Program-made: the position numbers and the translations under genes | Sequence record: NC_070957.1 | DNA: 64,000 nt | Direction: 5' to 3' (one strand) | Part shown: piece by piece, positions 4,498 to 38,155 of the stretch | How positions within the stretch are numbered: position 1 is the first letter of the stretch | Layout: each line of letters opens with the position of its first letter | Notes under the pieces: generated by a model | Databases searched by the model: none | What the model was told of the DNA's origin: nothing | The model's input: the letters and a program-made list of their open reading frames with translations, nothing else

Positions 4498-5990
4498 TTG
4501 TAATACTCCAGGGTTAAAGTTCGAATAACGATGTACAGCATCAGTGCTGTGCGGAGACTAGAGACTGTGTATTGAGTACGAATACCAGTCATAGCACGGA
4601 TGATTTCATCACCATTACGGCGAAGTTTGTGTAACAGGGCGTTGGAAGACTTGTTGGATGTATAAGCACCACGCAGCTTATAAACCACGTTCTTCAAATC
4701 GGTGTGACGGATTGAGTTGGAAGAGAGATATTCAAAAAGATGTATGACGCAGTCGTCAACAAATTCTCGATAGTCTTCACCCTTCTTGTGATTGTACTGT
4801 GCGGGGAAATCACGAATGACCATCGTGAGCTTATCCTCGAACTGAGTACTGGTTCTCGAATCATCAACGGCGCGCGCTGCGTAACCAACCAGTTCTTGCT
4901 TGTAGAAACTGGTTCCGTCGTTAACAACACCATTGATGTAGTTACGATACTTGTTTACGTGCTTTTGCACATCTTTGATATTGACTTCACCGTCCATCAT
5001 GGCGAGTCCATTATCAGTCGCTACCAGGTCAACGTTATCTTTGATTTCATAGAGGACTTTGGTGTAATCGTTGATAACACCTTTGAGCCGTGACTCCATG
5101 TCATTCACCATGTAAACAATGCGTTTGTCATCGTTCAACTTAGTGAATGTATCAAAGTGAATACCTGTCTTGGGATTGATAACGAATTCCCCACGAGCTT
5201 TGAAGAGTTCGTTCCAACTACCGAACCGCTTGATATCAAACTTCATGGAAAGTTTGTTGTACGCGGTTTGGGCAACACTGGGTTTAACCAGGTAACTGAA
5301 GTAGTGGTTCATGATGGAAGTCATGATCCGATAATGGAACAACATCACCAGGTTGATCAGTGCTTCGTCCTTCATATTCTTGGGAAGGTTAGAAACCCAG
5401 ACCTTGTGCATCAAGTAAACGATGGACAGGTTAAAAGCATCGGATGATACTTTAAAGTCTTTGTTTACCCAGCGAGTCCTGATCAGTTCATCACGAAGTC
5501 TGACTTCGTCAACATCAATGATGTCAGAGAAGAAGTTGTTACGATCCGCTGTTTTGAAGACGATTCGGTGTGTCCCCAAATAAGGTGTTCCGAAGAACTC
5601 GGTGTGATCGTTATCTTTGGTGGCGAAGCCGTAAACAAAGCGACGGAGTTTACTCACCCAACGCTGATCGATTACCAGGTCTTCCACGAGACCGTCAAAG
5701 ATGTCCTTGACTGCGTTATCTCGGTCATAGACAAAGTTAGGCGAAAGCGCTTCGAACCCTGTCATGTATTCGATGTTGTCGAGGTACGACTCCATACCAC
5801 CGTACTGGGTGAGTCTGACTTCTGGACCAAACAAGGTCTCAGGTTCAAACTCTTCCATTCCTGTCAGGATTTGTTCGTCCTGACGCATGGCGCGCATCAT
5901 CTGTTCGTAGTCACTCAGTTCCGTACCATCGGCATGCTGAGGACCTATCAGACGGAACTTAACTGCCCCGCCAGTGATACCATTGTACAT
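4494..5990 (-). CDS. Conserved phiKZ-like virion structural protein
   Basis: 498 aa; resembles recalled phiKZ-group virion proteins (DHTEFFG..LG.HR..F); N-terminal G-x-E motifs. Confidence 0.6.
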   Translation of the reverse strand: MYNGITGGAVKFRLIGPQHADGTELSDYEQMMRAMRQDEQILTGMEEFEPETLFGPEVRLTQYGGMESYLDNIEYMTGFEALSPNFVYDRDNAVKDIFDGLVEDLVIDQRWVSKLRRFVYGFATKDNDHTEFFGTPYLGTHRIVFKTADRNNFFSDIIDVDEVRLRDELIRTRWVNKDFKVSSDAFNLSIVYLMHKVWVSNLPKNMKDEALINLVMLFHYRIMTSIMNHYFSYLVKPSVAQTAYNKLSMKFDIKRFGSWNELFKARGEFVINPKTGIHFDTFTKLNDDKRIVYMVNDMESRLKGVINDYTKVLYEIKDNVDLVATDNGLAMMDGEVNIKDVQKHVNKYRNYINGVVNDGTSFYKQELVGYAARAVDDSRTSTQFEDKLTMVIRDFPAQYNHKKGEDYREFVDDCVIHLFEYLSSNSIRHTDLKNVVYKLRGAYTSNKSSNALLHKLRRNGDEIIRAMTGIRTQYTVSSLRTALMLYIVIRTLTLEYYK

Positions 5991-6959: not shown

Positions 6960-7418
6960 TTACGAGAAGTCTCGGATTTCTTCCCATGCTTTACCGTACT
7001 TATTCAGTACGTAGTTGATGTAGAAAACACCGAAGAGGAAAGTGAGTATGGGGTTCACCTTGACCTCACCTTCGCCACCTGTTTTACCCAGGTTCAGTAT
7101 AGCCCGTCGGGCACTGAATGCAAAGATAATCATGGCGATGCAGTACATCAGGGATACGATCATCCCAAGGACCATCATGATCCTGGAGAACTCATCAGCT
7201 TCGCCGAGACCGGTCATCCAGGTAGAGATCCCATAGAGCGCTGCTGCGGTGTACAGGAACGCGCCTGAGAGCACTCGTTCATTACTCTGCTCACTTACGT
7301 GAGACTGGAGCTTGTACGCCCACATGAGGTTGTACGCACCCAGAGAGACGACAGAGAGAAAGACCATCAACCAGGTGCTGATCTTCATACGGGTTTGGAT
7401 CATAGAAATCATGAACAT
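6960..7418 (-). CDS. Multi-pass membrane protein
   Basis: Four hydrophobic segments, AAGGA SD, FFGVFYINY-type C-terminus. Confidence 0.65.
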   Translation of the reverse strand: MFMISMIQTRMKISTWLMVFLSVVSLGAYNLMWAYKLQSHVSEQSNERVLSGAFLYTAAALYGISTWMTGLGEADEFSRIMMVLGMIVSLMYCIAMIIFAFSARRAILNLGKTGGEGEVKVNPILTFLFGVFYINYVLNKYGKAWEEIRDFS

Positions 7419-7489
7419 TTCATTTCCTTAAAAGTTAGTAAGTTGCAATATATTAACCTTTGGGTAATTTTTAATAGAACATAATAAAA

Positions 7490-7521
7490 GCCTCTACTCT
7501 CCGGTTAGGGAGAGTAGAGGC
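7490..7521 (-). terminator. Intrinsic terminator closing the minus-strand RNA island
   Basis: GCCTCTACTCTCC/GGAGAGTAGAGGC stem, followed by TTTTATT on the minus strand. Confidence 0.8.
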
Positions 7522-7524
7522 GAT

Positions 7525-8387
7525 TACTGACGTGTACTACCTTCCCATTACTCACTCACTTCCCGATTATAGATCCGGCCAAAGACCTTATCGGGATCAA
7601 GAGAGTAATAGGCTGATAGCAAGTACGTGAGGGGTTCCAAACGGAAACCGTCACTTCTACCAACTTCCATGCAGAGCAAGCATGGCGGACCGTTCGACTT
7701 CGTTATTAAGGTGCTCTCTGAAGTATAGTCCCCTCAGCTACCCGCCGCGGCCTCAGCCGGGGGTTTTTGCTAAGGGCATCAGCCTTATATAACGTCGTCA
7801 CTGTACTGGCACTAACGAATAGAACCATCGGCGCACGGTTAGGGTACCTACGTGACTCGCGTCCGTTGGGACGGGAGATGGAACTTCCTTATAAAGGAAG
7901 AAAGGGTTTTGAACCCAGGATGCCCTGATCCATTGTAATAGACCATCGCTTCACTCCTTTCATTAGAACCTAGCATGCCTTTTCGGCCAAAATGGTTCAT
8001 CAGAGTTACTGTATATGGGAACTGTTCCGTGGGTTCAAAAAGGTATCCCGGACAATGACTAAGTAACCACACTCCACCCCATCAGCGCAAGCTAATGTAA
8101 GGTACGTCACTATCCAGGGAATAGGGCCGAGAACACGCTGTCTTTTAGAAGGATCGCTTTTGAGTGGTAAGTTCACTCATCTACTGCCAACCGACTTCCC
8201 CGTAGGGCTTCGTCTTAACTAACGTGTCTCGGTGATTCGTACTAGTATCTATCTGGTATGTTTGACACCTTGGGTATCATGGCAAACAGCCTAGGATTAA
8301 CCTATGTACAAATATAGTTGAGAGTGTAAGTAAGAAACACGGTAACAGGAGGCGGAGAAACCGTATGAATACACTTACACCCTCAAA
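7525..8387 (-). ncRNA. Candidate large structured ncRNA (~860 nt)
   Basis: No credible ORF; many local and long-range helices; A-C mismatches on + become G-U pairs on -; lies downstream of tRNAs and before a terminator. Confidence 0.6.
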
Positions 8388-8466
8388 GGGTGAGAACTCC
8401 TGGAATCGAACCAGGGCAATCCCGCGATGGGTTGTGCGGGCGACTTTCCTTTCGTCTTCAGTTCTC
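8388..8466 (-). ncRNA. tRNA-like element with aberrant anticodon arm
   Basis: Acceptor GAGAACT/AGTTCTC, T-arm CCTGG-TTCGATT-CCAGG, 10-nt anticodon loop, 3' ACCC rather than CCA. Confidence 0.7.
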
Positions 8467-8468
8467 GT

Positions 8469-8732
8469 TTACAGTTCGATGTCGAAAGACATCACTTCTT
8501 GTTCTTCGGTCAACTTGGTGTTAAGATCGTCAAAGCCACCAACGTGTTCATCATCCAGGAAGATCTGGGGAACTGTTGTGACTTGTCGACCACACAATTG
8601 ACTGAGTTGTGTTGTGTCGATTCCGGAAGACTTGATATCGATATATTCGAACGCGATACCTTTATCTTCGAGAAGCTCTTTTGCCTTTACACAGTAAGGG
8701 CAATTATCCTTTCCATAAACTTTGGCTTTCAT
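8469..8732 (-). CDS. Glutaredoxin
   Basis: CPYC active site, TVPQIF, GGFDDL. Confidence 0.92.
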   Translation of the reverse strand: MKAKVYGKDNCPYCVKAKELLEDKGIAFEYIDIKSSGIDTTQLSQLCGRQVTTVPQIFLDDEHVGGFDDLNTKLTEEQEVMSFDIEL

Positions 8733-8755
8733 GGTGTTTCTCTACGGACTTAAAA

Positions 8756-8831
8756 TGGCAGGCAAGCAAGGATTCGAACCTTGGACATCTGGTTTTGGAG
8801 ACCAGCGCTCTACCAACTGAGCTACTCACCT
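8756..8831 (-). tRNA. trnW: tRNA-Trp(CCA)
   Basis: Cloverleaf, loop CTCCAAA, GGTTCGAATCC, encoded CCA. Confidence 0.95.
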
Positions 8832-9018
8832 GTAATACGAATTCACATTACTACACACTCGCCGTTCTTCCTAGTTTCCGTTCCGAACGTTCCACGGTTC
8901 ACCGTCACCATATACTTTATCCATTCGGACGCCATCTGTGGCTATCAAGTACTTAGGTCCATATTGGTTATGTCTGTTGACACCCGTGTGTAAACCAGAT
9001 TAATCTGGGGTGAAAATA

Positions 9019-9095
9019 TGGCAGGGATAACGGGGCTCGAACCCGCGACCTCCGGCGTGACAGGCCGGCACTCTAACCATCTGAGCTACATCCCT
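9019..9095 (-). tRNA. trnD: tRNA-Asp(GTC)
   Basis: Cloverleaf, loop CTGTCAC, encoded CCA. Confidence 0.95.
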
Positions 9096-9101
9096 AAAAT
9101 G

Positions 9102-9200
9102 TTTACCCATCACATGTTCTTACATCGTAGGCGGCTGTGGATCTCAGGTATCTACCGAAGTAGCCTGACCAGATAACCCCGAAACCACATGACAGGTAAA
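9102..9200 (-). ncRNA. Candidate small structured RNA between tRNA-Asn and tRNA-Asp
   Basis: ~15-bp terminal stem with several G-U pairs; internal CAGG-CTAC-TTCG-GTAG-ATA-CCTG hairpin. Confidence 0.5.
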
Positions 9201-9201
9201 T

Positions 9202-9277
9202 TGGCGGTTCCTGCTGGACTTGAACCAGCGACATATGCATTAACAGTGCACCGTTCTACCTACTGAACTAAGGAACC
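9202..9277 (-). tRNA. trnN: tRNA-Asn(GTT)
   Basis: Cloverleaf, loop CTGTTAA, encoded CCA. Confidence 0.95.
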
Positions 9278-9283
9278 TGAATA

Positions 9284-9548
9284 TGGAGCCGACTAACGGA
9301 ATCGAACCGATGACCGGTGGAAACCATTGCTTCGGCCAGGGTGTTGAACAGCGCAGAGGACCAGATCAGGCGAGCATCGAAACCATCGATGATCACGTTG
9401 CCCTGGAACATGTGCTGGAGCTTGTTGNNNNNNNNNNGTCCCCAGAATCTCATTGTCAGATTAGGGCGATGAACGTGTTCGAGATTACGGATCTCGATAC
9501 TCGCCCCTTTGATGACCGATACACCTCTACCTACTGAGCTAAGTCGGC
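9284..9548 (-). tRNA. tRNA (probably Thr) broken by assembly gap; anticodon arm missing
   Basis: 5' half GCCGACTTAGCTCAGTAGGTAGAG (9525-9548) and 3' half GGTCATCGGTTCGATTCCGTTAGTCGGCTCCA (9284-9315) flank chimeric sequence and 10 Ns; resembles enterobacterial tRNA-Thr(TGT). Confidence 0.65.
9313..9524. other. Assembly chimera and gap
   Basis: 9313-9427 is the exact reverse complement of 34553-34667 (chmA); Ns at 9428-9437; 9438-9524 reads as an unrelated coding fragment. Confidence 0.85.
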
Positions 9549-9782: not shown

Positions 9783-9852
9783 ATCGACAGTCTCCGTTGT
9801 TAGCGATTTGGCTTTCCAACGTACTACCAGCAATATCGAACATCTTGCATAA

Positions 9853-9997
9853 CAATGAGTTTCCCAGAGTTTGACATTTTCTATCCATCATGGTCCCCGA
9901 GACCGGATTTCGGGACGCGCCGGTGCTACTTCGATTCTAGACCGAAGTGTAATGGTGTTTTTTACTATTCGGGGATTTTTGTCAAACCACTTCATTG
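9853..9997 (-). ncRNA. Structured RNA motif, copy 1
   Basis: CAATGA/TCATTG outer stem, GTTTGACA/TGTCAAAC inner stem, motifs shared with copy 2. Confidence 0.6.
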
Positions 9998-10006
9998 TTT
10001 ATTTAT

Positions 10007-10145
10007 CAATGAGTTTCCCAGGGTGTAGAGTATTTTATCCGCTGCGGGCAGGCCAGGTGGGTCTTCGGGACGCACCCACAGTTGGCTCAAGAGAGATGCC
10101 TTGTGTTTTGGCGACTGGCCTTTATTTCTCTACACTACTTCATTG
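10007..10145 (-). ncRNA. Structured RNA motif, copy 2
   Basis: CAATGA/TCATTG outer stem, GTGTAGAG/CTCTACAC inner stem, shared GTTTCCCAG and TTCGGGACGC. Confidence 0.6.
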
Positions 10146-10998
10146 AAAGGTGTTAGCTGTTTCTCTCTTGGAGCCCAGCATCGTCACCAGGATAAAACCT
10201 TTGTGTGACAACACTCAATTAACACCTATATCATTGTGACACCTTCTCGGTGTGATACATAGTCGATCACCGCATTGGTTAGATCCCTGATGGACGACTG
10301 GACGCTGCGTATAGCAGTGTTTGTCTCCTAGGTGGGTATCGCCAGCACCGTGTCGGCTATAGGATGTGATCACACGAGGAAACCAGAGGGATGTCCAACC
10401 CTTTTCAGTTACATGTGATCACGAAAGCTGTTGTTAACAAAGTATAATAACTTGTTGTTACTAAATACTTTTCAATTGGCTCTCTTTGAAAGCTAATAGA
10501 AAAGAGGTCTTCACAAACCGTATGGAAGACCTTTGAAAAATGTAAAGGATTAACAATGAAAAATAAACCAACCATACACGAAAGCCAACACCAATGACCT
10601 TCTATATAAACTCTCTTTGAAGAGCATATATAGAAAGGGGGTAGGAAGACTACCCCGCGGGTAAAAGCAATAACCCAAGAACGTGCAGATATTGAAAGCG
10701 GGAGCTTTCTTGATAATGACTCTTGGGTGAATCAGTATTAAGAAAGCAAGGGATAAAGCTGCGCACAAAATCCCTTTGCTTGTATTACGTAGGAGTTTAT
10801 TCAATGGCTTCGTTTTGACCACTGTCGCGTTCAGTAATCAAAAGGAAGCATTTTTGTACATATAATAACAGACACCCATAACTTTTCAGGTAGATATTAT
10901 CTACATGAGAAACCCGTTGGTATCTTAATTGTATGGTACAACTGTGTGGGATTTCCTACACTATATGATTACCTCTATCATCATAAGGAAACAGAGTT

Positions 10999-35572: not shown

Positions 35573-36988
35573 GTGAGTACCATTATCCGAGTTCTTAAGG
35601 ATTACTCCGAAGAACAATTACTTCCTCAAAATCTCTTCAACCAGATTCTCGAGGGCACGGGGTATATTCCGGAAATGGATGATGAGCGGTTCTATACTGC
35701 AATCTATCCCCATTTCGAAAACTACGACCAACGACACGACAACTGCACAACACTCCCGATCTACCTGAATGACCACGACTTTCGAATCGAAGAAGATCGT
35801 GAACGTATCGTGCAAGCCCTTCGTACCGAGTATGAAGGTAACACATTCGATACGGTTGCAGTTTGTTCACCCAGCTGCGGTAAGTATCGCGGCAACATGT
35901 ATCTCAACTCTGGGATTGTCTGTGACGTTTGTGGCGAGACACCAAGTCGTCCACTGAGCGAACAGATCGAGACCAAGGTTTGGTTGAGAACTCCACCCAG
36001 GGTTTCTGGTTTCCTGTCACCGGCTATATATGAGGTATTCCTCAGTAAGCTCAAAACCAAAACACCGAAAATCAATTTCGTTCAGTATTGGATGGATGAA
36101 GGTTATCGGAGAGACAAACGGTTCCGTGATCCAGTAGGTGAAACACCGGCGTACAAAATGGCTCAGAAGCTCAATGCTTTTAGTAGTGCCATTGGTATCG
36201 ACTTCGGGTATAATAATTTTATCGATAACATCGATACGATTATCAATGCAGCAGTCACCCAAGACTTTATGGGGATCCTCGATCTCAATGAAGTACAACG
36301 TGACCATTGCACCCGGTTCTGGGCCAAGTATAAGGAGTTTGCAGTTAGCAACTTCCTTCCGCTTCCGAACAAGATTGCCACGGTGATCGAATCTGACCAA
36401 CGTGACCGTTACGTCAACAAGGAAAAGACTGATCTGGAAAAGATCTTCTTTACCATAGCAGATATGTATCACGAAATGGACCATCGTTCTGTTCAGAACG
36501 AAGTTCTGTTCGGTAAGAACTATTTCGAGATGCAGGCAGTGATGCTCAAAGTGATGAAAGAGATTCTCTTTAAGAAGAAGGGGATGTTCCGATATCACGC
36601 CGGGGCTGGTAAACTGCCATTTACTGGGCGCTCCATCATTACCGGTGAATCAGGCGTTTGTCGTTCTGATACCGTGGTGGTTCCCTGGCTTTATGGCATC
36701 ACCTGTTTGAACCATCATCTGACCAACTGGTTGTACCGTCGCGGCTATACACCCAAAGCGGTTAAGCGGATCATCCGTGAATCTGCCAACTTCCGTCACC
36801 CGGTGATAGAAGAGTTCTTTGACTGGGTGGAGAACAACCGCTATGCTGTAGCAACAGTAGGTCGTAACCCATCGATTCAGTTCTTGTCATCAAGAACTTT
36901 CTTCATCAAGTTCAACCGGGATATTGAGGATAAGTCTATTCGTATCCCAATCACCTGCGTGAAAGAATTTGGTGCTGACTTTGACGGT
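35573..36988 (+). CDS. Non-virion RNAP beta'-like subunit (phiKZ gp55-like), exon 1
   Basis: Zn-finger CGKY..CDVC, GRSII, RNPSI, ends GADFDG. Confidence 0.9.
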
Positions 36989-37298
36989 AAACTAAATTGC
37001 TGTCATTAAACCCTTTCAATTGCTGGAAACCCCTTAGAGCTCGATCAACTACAACGCAACCAGAAATGGTAAACGTGAATGTTTGAAAATGATCGAGATT
37101 GGGCAATCAGCAGCGAAGACTCTAAGTACATCTGTGATAGATGGATATGAGTAACGTTCAACGACTACGTTCCCAGAAGCCTGGGATGATGAGGGCACCC
37201 TAAAGGGTGAAGATATAGTCTCTACCGGTATGAAAGTATCGGAAAGATCATTTAGCGAATGATCATAAAGCCGTCGAGATGACGTTACAATGTAATAG
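36989..37298 (+). mobile_element. Group I intron, 310 nt, no ORF
   Basis: P AATTGCTGGAAA 37018, Q AATCAGCAG 37105, R GTTCAACGACTA 37156, S AAGATATAGTCT 37210; P1 GACGGT/GCTGTC with U-G at 5' splice site; terminal G. Confidence 0.92.
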
Positions 37299-37489: not shown

Positions 37490-38155
37490 GTGATCAATGT
37501 AACAAGCGCGTTCTCAATGGGTATCGGTGGTAGCATGTCTAAAGCCGCTGCTGATGTTTATAACCAAACTCTGACTTCGATATATGACGGGATGTCGAAC
37601 CTGGGTGGTTGGTTGGGTGGCGCTGTCCAATCGGTTGTCCAAAGCCATGAAAACTTCATGAACTCTAACATGTGGGAGTTCAGTAAGCGGATTGGTAAAG
37701 ACGGTCACTATGTTGGACGTTTCGATGTAGGTTACCTGTCGGAAGTGGGTTATCAACAACAAGCTGTCGGGTTGATGCGGAACTACATCATGGCTAACCC
37801 CAAGATGATGGAACTGTACGAAGCCGATCGCATATCTGGTTATGATGGTGAAATCTCTGATCTCTGTAGTGGGATCGGTCGTGACAACTATTTCTATAAC
37901 CGTGCTGTTGATGGCCTGATGCGCATCGAAGATGATGAAGCGGTGCGTACTCACTACGCCACATCTCTCGACAAGTATACTCACTTGTCAGCGATGGAAC
38001 GTGTGGATATCAAACGTACCTGGGCGGCTAGCAATATCCATATTGCTAAGAACCTCTTTGACCCAAGTAGTATTTCTGGCGGGAAGATTCTTTCTGTAGA
38101 GGAAGTTGAAGCCATCCAGAAACAAATGGAAGAAGAAGCGGGCGACGCCCAGTAA
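37490..38155 (+). CDS. Conserved phiKZ-like hypothetical protein
   Basis: Long ORF, QQAVGLMRNYIMANP motif; core-block position. Confidence 0.7.
   Translation: MINVTSAFSMGIGGSMSKAAADVYNQTLTSIYDGMSNLGGWLGGAVQSVVQSHENFMNSNMWEFSKRIGKDGHYVGRFDVGYLSEVGYQQQAVGLMRNYIMANPKMMELYEADRISGYDGEISDLCSGIGRDNYFYNRAVDGLMRIEDDEAVRTHYATSLDKYTHLSAMERVDIKRTWAASNIHIAKNLFDPSSISGGKILSVEEVEAIQKQMEEEAGDAQ

Follow-up and report, generated by a model that had tools for sequence, protein, structure and literature searches.

What is encoded in a stretch of phage DNA that is flanked by genes and carries none is the question raised by a gene-free gap of 1,050 nt (7419-8468), bordered by two minus-strand genes of Aeromonas phage D3 (MN102098 / NC_070957). 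This phage belongs to the genus Ludhianavirus, assigned to the Chimalliviridae, which are the nucleus-forming jumbo phages, and the window analysed here comprises bases 1-64000 of its genome, to which it is 100% identical, the flagged interval having the same coordinates in both. A first-pass annotation had placed a large, ornate non-coding RNA at 7525-8316, adjoining phage tRNA genes. Such an RNA was borne out by our analyses; it does occupy those positions, and the element is larger (7490-8466). We consider it very probable that this is a real structured RNA gene of a new family. In our model, the D3 RNA is composed of a tRNA-like cloverleaf, a 5′ domain of 530 nt, a pseudoknotted 3′ core of 320 nt and a terminator, and comparisons of the sequences indicate that the 3′ core is kept at the same position in OBP-like Chimalliviridae of Aeromonas, Erwinia, Pseudomonas, Klebsiella and Kosakonia. 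The complete account, in which the structured RNA is also released by a processing route and acts in trans, seems to us probable, with clearly less assurance. The main parts are the following:

7490-8466, minus strand: whole RNA element (about 0.98 kb), from the tRNA-like cloverleaf (5′) to the intrinsic terminator (3′)
8391-8466, minus strand: tRNA-like cloverleaf, starting 2 nt past the glutaredoxin stop codon
7857-8387, minus strand: 5′ domain, specific to D3-type phages, as predicted with RNAalifold
7826-7852, minus strand: Pa hairpin, the first element of the 3′ core
7535-7693, minus strand: rest of the 3′ core after Pa (H1, Pc and H2)
7490-7521, minus strand: intrinsic terminator, a 13-bp GC-rich stem with a 6-nt loop, then UUUUAUU

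Covariation was assessed in an alignment of D3, phage LAh10 and three diverged contigs from public read assemblies (L073, L074 and L075), that is, five sequences of four lineages. The proteins of these contigs with the virion domain DUF7484 are 84-85% identical to that of D3, and their gaps align with the D3 gap over its whole length, with a mean column identity of about 65%. The consensus structure predicted by RNAalifold contains 190 pairs, with 89% of the cells canonical, and 71 of the pairs present compensatory changes, meaning that in at least one sequence both partners are changed and the pairing is kept. When the 3′ partner was moved by 1-3 columns as a control, the canonical fraction was 38-48% and the number of "compensatory" pairs 7-19. 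The terminator stem contributes four compensatory pairs to this alignment. These comparisons point to a structure under purifying selection, kept by compensatory substitutions in the diverged relatives. The helices predicted in the 5′ domain are:

8384-8372/8332-8320, minus strand: P1 hairpin
8244-8119, minus strand: module R1, formed by the helix 8232-8217/8143-8127 and an inner three-way junction
8232-8217/8143-8127, minus strand: R1 main helix, 16 pairs, 6 of them compensatory
8213-8206/8199-8191, minus strand: R1 inner hairpin, with 2 compensatory pairs
8179-8174/8166-8161, minus strand: R1 hairpin
8118-8106/8059-8046, minus strand: helix of 13 pairs, 5 compensatory
8040-8026/7920-7907, minus strand: long-range helix of 14 pairs, 5 compensatory, which encloses the next two elements
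8006-8003/7956-7953, minus strand: helix inside the long-range helix
7945-7938/7933-7926, minus strand: hairpin inside the long-range helix
7900-7884 and 7877-7856, minus strand: hairpins in the 3′ part of the 5′ domain

All the complementary segments listed by the first-pass annotation are present in the DNA, and three of its helices were confirmed by covariation in the alignment: 7909-7917/8030-8038 lies within the long-range helix, 8127-8137/8223-8232 within the R1 main helix, and 7544-7553/7603-7612 forms the base of the H2 hairpin described below, being kept also in phage ZPAH34. The proposed CCC-UACG-GGG hairpin near 8200 is partly supported, by the two compensatory pairs of the R1 inner hairpin. 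On the other hand, the helix 7931-7936/8052-8057, thought to cross the long-range helix, can form in D3 and LAh10 only; most of its positions pair in 2-3 of the five sequences, and both of its arms are used by the covarying helices 7945-7938/7933-7926 and 8118-8106/8059-8046. The helix 8004-8010/8062-8068 is likewise unsupported: in L073 and L074 three of its seven positions fail to pair, and the alignment joins 8006-8003 to 7956-7953 instead. The long-range pseudoknot claimed from 7909-7917/8030-8038 and 7931-7936/8052-8057 is therefore unsupported, and a different one was found at 7839-7835 with 7693-7689. Two pairings given by RNAalifold, that of the 3′ acceptor strand of the tRNA-like element with 7718-7713 and that of 8465-8462 with the terminator tail, were rejected as probably artefactual.

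Of the 1051 nt of the RNA, 11 differ between D3 and LAh10, compared with 34 of 1411 nt in the two adjacent genes. Inside a high-confidence helix there are two of these differences, at the neighbouring positions 8110 and 8111 of the 13-pair helix, where A-U/G-U becomes G-U/A-U and the pairing is kept. LAh10 is 99% identical to D3 over the RNA, and collinearity is lost immediately upstream (the equivalent of 8470), with 590 mismatches in a forced alignment of 1,500 nt beyond this point; judged from the sequences, the glutaredoxin/tRNA side of the locus appears rearranged between species of one genus.

More distant members were needed to define the family. A blastn search of the D3 gap against 50,697 phage records returned only D3 itself and the near-identical copies of D6, D9 and LAh10, together with a tRNA-like piece of 85 nt in ZPAH34. 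Relatives were sought via homologues of the DUF7484 virion gene in IMG/VR, JGI/ENA metagenomes, GenBank phages and a large protein collection. Wherever the DUF7484 protein was at least 60% identical, the same arrangement was found every time: a tRNA cluster comes first, usually followed by a glutaredoxin gene or small open reading frame (ORF) and often by another tRNA; next come a gene-free block and a strong terminator, and last, on the same strand, the DUF7484 gene. In most relatives this block has 0.9-1.1 kb, and in Chaoshanvirus it is shorter. This arrangement occurs in Ferozepurvirus (PS1, PS2, AVP1, ACP1, pAEv1810 and five metagenome contigs), Chaoshanvirus (ZPAH34 and CF8) and Meadowvirus (Erwinia phage AH04), and also in Pseudomonas phage OBP, Edwardsiella phage pEt-SU, Klebsiella phage N1M2, Kosakonia phage Kc263, Serratia phage Yubaba and Shewanella phage SXP01; in all relatives examined the RNA locus is likewise closed by a strong terminator. 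In distant phages (38-44% identity; EL and RisingSun types) the arrangement is another one and the motifs are absent.

Between subfamilies, short motifs recur in a fixed order at the 3′ end of the gene-free block, and they define the 3′ core, formed by Pa, the pseudoknot, H1, Pc and H2, at the same locus in Ludhianavirus, Ferozepurvirus, AH04, OBP, N1M2 and Kc263. It was studied in an alignment of 12 core segments, extended to 17 sequences by anchored extraction. In D3 its predicted elements are:

7852-7846/7832-7826, minus strand: stem of the Pa hairpin, closing the 13-nt loop ACCCUAACCGUGC
7839-7835 with 7693-7689, minus strand: pseudoknot, ACCGU of the Pa loop with ACGGU
7685-7680/7672-7667, minus strand: H1 hairpin, whose last G opens the invariant GAAGUKG
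7667-7660, minus strand: conserved GAAGUUGG
7664-7657/7619-7612, minus strand: Pc helix, GUUGKU.. with ..CAGC
7654-7627, minus strand: lineage-specific hairpin inside Pc
7611-7583/7576-7545, minus strand: H2 long hairpin, 22 pairs, 12 of them compensatory, followed by the terminator

In its family form, Pa has a stem of 5 bp and a 13-nt loop with the consensus gCCYUAACNGUGa, and 4 of the 5 stem positions present several canonical pair types over the 12 to 17 sequences. The pseudoknot of the family has 5 bp and joins the loop ACNGU to a downstream ACN′GU. Its central pair is C-G in seven sequences (D3-type, OBP, N1M2 and Kc263), A-U in the five of Ferozepurvirus and U-A in five AH04-like RNAs, being canonical in 17/17. 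In the alignment of 12 segments this pairing was canonical in all 12, versus 8-40% with a slid partner. As a control for chance, a scan of IMG/VR with the bare core pattern at the D3 spacing gave 12 chance matches, and the central bases were complementary in two of these, a near-duplicate pair. The Pa/pseudoknot motif pair occurs once per genome, in a single place of the 64-kb window. In H1, five of the six pairs covary across genera. The apical CUUUGGCCGG of H2 (7584-7575, minus strand) is unchanged in all five D3-type sequences and the stem that carries it covaries. This segment includes the palindrome GGCC, and ZPAH34 and CF8 have an invariant CAAAGGCCACG at the equivalent place; from its sequence, the apical GGCC loop is a possible kissing-loop or self-association site. 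D3 carries all the features proposed for the family, including its place after the tRNA cluster and before the DUF7484 gene. Two further candidates were rejected: a shared 5′ motif, UUUGUAC...GAUAYCCAAG, found in D3 and some hammerhead-type RNAs, fails in other members, and a match to motif A in SXP01 is the CPNC-coding part of the glutaredoxin gene of this phage.

The coordinates of the first-pass annotation implied the plus strand, which was not supported. The RNA is encoded by the minus strand, as indicated by the flanking genes, all of them on that strand, by the terminator, by the folding energies and by the asymmetry of G-U pairs. The minimum free energy of the minus strand was lower than that of all 100 shuffled controls (z -6.2; 0/100 shuffles as stable), versus z -1.4 for the plus strand; with 20 shuffles the values were -4.2 and -1.4, respectively. 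When the sense structure is mirrored to the plus strand, 119 G-U cells become C-A and canonical pairing falls from 89% to 79%, which is independent evidence for the minus strand. The genes around the element are:

6960-7418, minus strand: gene of a DUF4234 protein, downstream neighbour of the gap
8469-8732, minus strand: glutaredoxin gene (Pfam Glutaredoxin, E 1e-16), upstream neighbour of the gap
8756-9277, minus strand: tRNA-Trp, tRNA-Asp and tRNA-Asn, upstream of the glutaredoxin gene and presumably in the same transcription unit

On the minus strand there is no terminator-like site from about 10638 to 7521, which argues for cotranscription of the RNA with the tRNA-glutaredoxin unit. Further upstream, 1.2 kb between divergent genes (9783-10998) has no annotated gene and only short ORFs, with 37-38% GC in its right half; this stretch probably serves to control the tRNA operon and could hold further RNA elements.

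At its 5′ edge the RNA presents the tRNA-like element, with an acceptor stem of 7 bp (8466-8460/8398-8392), a canonical T arm (8415-8411/8403-8399) with the loop UUCGAUU, an "anticodon" stem (8440-8436/8425-8421) with an abnormal loop of 10 nt, and a D loop with GG; the discriminator A is followed by CC (8390-8388 being CCC). ARAGORN at default settings did not call it as a tRNA, and the RF00005 model did not report it even at E ≤ 10 in the search of 7300-9400; under relaxed settings ARAGORN called an aberrant cloverleaf with a 10-nt loop and a weak D arm. The copy in ZPAH34 is 79% identical and reaches 38 bits with RF00005. In L074, L075 and ZPAH34 the element is kept, its anticodon and T stems having undergone compensatory changes, and in L073 it is reduced to the acceptor stem closing a short loop. 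A scan of IMG/VR with the tRNA-like pattern gave 0 matches. A genuine tRNA lies directly against the 5′ end of the RNA in Ferozepurvirus (tRNA-Leu), N1M2 and Yubaba. The presence of a tRNA-shaped structure at this edge in many lineages suggests, and from it we infer, that host tRNA-processing enzymes set the 5′ end of the RNA. We also considered whether the D3 element had arisen by decay of the tRNA-Met that N1M2, Yubaba and CF8 carry in the equivalent place, and discarded this idea, as the sequences are unrelated.

Non-decoding cloverleaves fused to long RNAs are known from the mascRNA of MALAT1 and from viral tRNA-like structures, and they can recruit RNase P/RNase Z. By analogy only, the D3 element resembles them in keeping the acceptor stem, the T arm, the GG of the D loop and the ACC tail, with a 10-nt anticodon loop; it differs in its place at the 5′ end of the RNA, not the 3′ end, and its cleavage is proposed by the same analogy. 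The tRNA cluster of phage T4 encodes "species 1" and "species 2", stable non-tRNA RNAs of about 120-140 nt that are cotranscribed with the tRNAs and freed by tRNA processing. The non-tRNA part of the D3 RNA differs from these in having about 0.9 kb and a conserved pseudoknotted core, and no homology is expected.

In several relatives a second processing device is predicted. OBP, AH04, N1M2, Kc263, Yubaba, pEt-SU and SXP01 carry a complete hammerhead core composed of CUGAYGAG, stem II, CGAAAC, a long stem III, GUC and a short stem I. Stem III covaries (CUUCAC/GUGAAG versus UCUGUC/GACAGA), as does a tertiary pairing of the 5′ flank of stem I with the loop of stem II (CAUCG/CGAUG, CGUCG/CGACG and CCCG/CGGG). 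The Rfam match is weak (Hammerhead_3, 20 bits, E 0.02 in a 126-nt search) and below the Rfam thresholds, and these hammerheads are unannotated in the records inspected. A hammerhead pattern scan returned this core in six contigs of jumbo phages, together with small canonical hammerheads from phages unrelated to them. The OBP hammerhead lies at 5594-5676 of loci L003/L021, and others are in L017 (pEt-SU), L057 (AH04), L077, L078, L079 and L076. Type I hammerheads with a pseudoknot between stem I and stem II are described by Perreault et al. 2011 (PMC3088659). The relatives of D3, and not D3 itself, resemble them in the full catalytic core, the GUC triplet and the covarying tertiary pseudoknot, and differ in the position of the ribozyme, mid-way in a structured RNA of 1 kb, and in the unusually long stem III. 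The predicted cleavage site is 7-8 nt upstream of Pa, so that the predicted cut would free the 3′ core with a 5′-OH end; pEt-SU and SXP01 have no core, and in them the ribozyme immediately precedes the terminator. Neither Rfam nor inspection revealed a hammerhead in the RNAs of D3-type phages, Ferozepurvirus and Chaoshanvirus. A degenerate D3 hammerhead was considered in type I and type III topologies and rejected: CUGAUGA at 8004-7998 is a chance match, no compatible GAAA or stem III is present, and stem I cannot form.

We propose that the RNA would be the 3′-terminal part of the tRNA-glutaredoxin transcription unit and that, at the tRNA-like element, host enzymes of tRNA processing would excise it from the longer transcript. 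The 5′ side of this element would be the site of RNase P cleavage, possibly with 3′ trimming after the ACC, and the intrinsic terminator would fix the 3′ end of the RNA. The internal type-I hammerhead would, in most other genera, also part the 5′ domain from the 3′ core. Once released, the RNA or its modules would act in trans as folded RNA, like the phage RNAs GOLLD and ROOL, and neither as an antisense regulator nor as a coding RNA. Its role may be that of a scaffold, an assembly or a binding partner, the conserved pseudoknotted core binding a conserved partner or self-assembling.

How far the members form a single molecule was examined by comparing their modules. Profiles made with nhmmer matched between subfamilies only in the terminators and the tRNA-like element, and global MAFFT alignments of D3 with ZPAH34 and of all subfamilies were uninformative outside the anchors. 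A covariance model of R1 (8244-8119) matches a shortened copy in ZPAH34 and CF8 (E 1e-6 and 6.5e-6), and a model of R2 (7897-8044), the domain of the main helix of the first-pass annotation, matches D3-type loci only. The R1 copy (CCGAGAC...GUUCUCGGCCC) lies directly 3′ of a tRNA-Leu, at 5544-5622 on the minus strand of L002 and at 1500-1581 on the plus strand of L080. On sequence comparison, the locus is best read as a mosaic of a widely kept 3′ core, lineage-specific 5′ domains and optional processing devices (hammerhead, tRNA, tRNA-like element). Genes of HNH homing endonucleases were observed repeatedly beside or inside the tRNA/RNA locus of relatives (L075 1298-1774; L060 1262-1605; L058 292-795; L078 1-459), and they may explain the reshuffling of modules.

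Several observations weigh against the interpretation of a single trans-acting RNA. In ZPAH34 and CF8 a real tRNA stands between the R1 copy and the remainder of the locus; its position is the same in both, and it is a tRNA-Asn in the former and a tRNA-Met in the latter. Together with pEt-SU and SXP01, which keep the locus without the 3′ core, these split modules suggest that the modules are independent, or that several RNAs are processed from the locus, rather than that a single 1-kb molecule is obligatory. The 5′ domains are unalignable between subfamilies, both with nhmmer and with the R2 covariance model, and the sequences establish one family only for the 3′ core and for the R1 module common with Chaoshanvirus. 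The covariation of the D3-type 5′ domain is based on four lineages only. Control folds of coding regions of the window also gave z of -2.3 to -4.1, so that folding energy is by itself weak evidence, and a sigma-70 promoter scan was uninformative for a phage of the Chimalliviridae. For every member, the transcript boundaries, the RNase P cleavage and the stability of the RNA are what we infer from the sequences, and the function is proposed by analogy only.

Among the other explanations, the one that survives best, although unlikely, is that of a cis-acting tail, a long structured 3′ untranslated region that would keep 3′ exonucleases away from the tRNA precursor or mRNA and insulate the early operon from the downstream virion genes, with no separate existence as an RNA. 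The constant position at the 3′ end of the tRNA cluster, the very strong terminator and the poor conservation of the 5′ domains between genera agree with such a tail. However, a stabiliser needs neither a conserved 13-nt loop, nor a covarying long-range pseudoknot, nor invariant apical loops, and the hammerhead would in most genera cut the core from what lies upstream, the opposite of a protective tail. This freeing of the core is the strongest argument against cis models in general. It bears also on the second one, a regulatory leader of the virion genes (DUF4234 and DUF7484) acting by conditional read-through, put-like antitermination or as a giant riboswitch, since the cleavage would sever the 5′ domain from the terminator region. 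Although the RNA, the terminator and the DUF7484 gene have the same order and strand in every genus, no alternative core-terminator pairing was seen, L005/L023, L010 and L016 have an opposite-strand ORF of 132-144 aa between the terminator and the DUF7484 gene, and pEt-SU and SXP01 keep the locus without a core. We regard the leader as improbable, more so than the tail.

The first-pass annotation had left the choice between a divergent GOLLD or ROOL and a new class, and the new class is what our results favour. GOLLD and ROOL are ornate, pseudoknotted RNAs of about 0.6-0.8 kb, found in phages and prophages, typically next to tRNA genes and sometimes with a tRNA embedded. Rfam 15, applied to the window at gathering thresholds and to both strands of 7300-9400 at E ≤ 10, gave no match to GOLLD (RF01998) or ROOL (RF03087), and none was found in the relatives; over the window and relatives it returned tRNAs, one group I intron elsewhere and noise only. 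For tmRNA, RNase P RNA and group I/II introns there was no covariance-model match in the gap, and ARAGORN found no tmRNA there, so that the RNA is none of these families. A highly divergent GOLLD or ROOL would have the similar size, the phage origin, the adjacency to tRNAs and the pseudoknotted ornate architecture in its favour, but with those negative searches, and with the motifs gCCYUAACNGUGa and GAAGUKGU retrieving neither family, it is very improbable. The RNA family is absent from Rfam 15 and apparently undescribed, and the searchable literature, recent reviews of jumbo phages included, makes no mention of it.

The likeness to GOLLD and ROOL is one of kind: the D3 RNA has more than 500 nt, is non-coding and phage-encoded, adjoins tRNAs and has a covarying multi-helix fold with a pseudoknot. 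As in those RNAs, a tRNA or tRNA-like element abuts the RNA here or, in ZPAH34 and CF8, interrupts it. They differ in the lack of covariance-model similarity and in the setting, which is here that of Gammaproteobacteria hosts and lytic nucleus-forming jumbo phages, and in the hammerhead that many members contain. GOLLD and ROOL are described as forming multimeric cages in a cryo-EM preprint (bioRxiv 10.1101/2024.12.08.627333). For the D3 RNA, the only hint of such a behaviour is the invariant GGCC apical loop (7584-7575). Given that function is proposed by analogy, we would describe the RNA as a new family of the GOLLD/ROOL kind, rather than a categorically new kind.

That the locus is non-functional debris, made of decayed tRNAs and of dead hammerhead or intron remnants retained by linkage, is as improbable as a divergent GOLLD or ROOL. 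The tRNA-like element does resemble a damaged tRNA, D3 is without the hammerhead of its relatives, and modules were gained, lost and reshuffled between genera. Debris, however, would not account for 71 compensatory pairs, for invariant loops in covarying stems, for an RNA more conserved than the adjacent genes between D3 and LAh10, or for a locus that persists in genera infecting Aeromonas, Erwinia, Pseudomonas, Klebsiella and Kosakonia. The single intron of the window lies elsewhere, a group I intron at 36979-37242 on the plus strand (RF00028, 88 bits, full-length model), between the ORFs 35573-37009 and 37490-38155.

Hidden small protein genes are the least probable explanation: GenBank does annotate gp006 (40 aa, 7548-7670, minus strand), and small ORFs on the same locus in other records, but neither gp006 nor the longest ORFs of the gap (74 and 56 aa) have a Pfam or PHROG match, gp006 lies inside the folded 3′ core and overlaps the covarying H2 hairpin, where the substitutions are compensatory for pairing, and in the relatives the ORFs fail to persist and the indel lengths are not divisible by three. 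The RNA region has no coding capacity, as had been supposed when no credible ORF was seen in it. The "hypothetical protein" ORFs annotated on the RNA locus elsewhere, such as N1M2 gp252, Kc263 gp258 and AVP1_0151 (in L078, L077 and L059), are probably not genes, and the annotation of several GenBank records would be corrected on this point.

Large non-coding RNAs that adopt a conserved, structured fold are rare, and OLE, GOLLD, ROOL, raiA and HEARO each opened a new question. For the RNA described here, culturable phage-host pairs exist (D3, PS1, ZPAH34, OBP, AH04, N1M2 and Kc263), and the natural variants with and without the hammerhead, the tRNA-like element and the core constitute a ready-made deletion series. 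The setting is that of the Chimalliviridae, whose transcription takes place only inside a proteinaceous nucleus and whose RNA trafficking is little understood. In a further and doubtful extension of our interpretation, the RNA might be a new class of RNA-only machine of the nucleus-forming jumbo phages, either a self-assembling, cage-like multimer in which the GGCC loop could make a kissing contact or a catalytic or chaperone RNA acting on the phage tRNA transcripts. If this were true, the hammerhead and the tRNA-like element would be built-in maturation devices that release active modules, and the chaperone or catalytic RNA would serve the tRNA transcripts made in the phage nucleus, away from the processing enzymes of the host.

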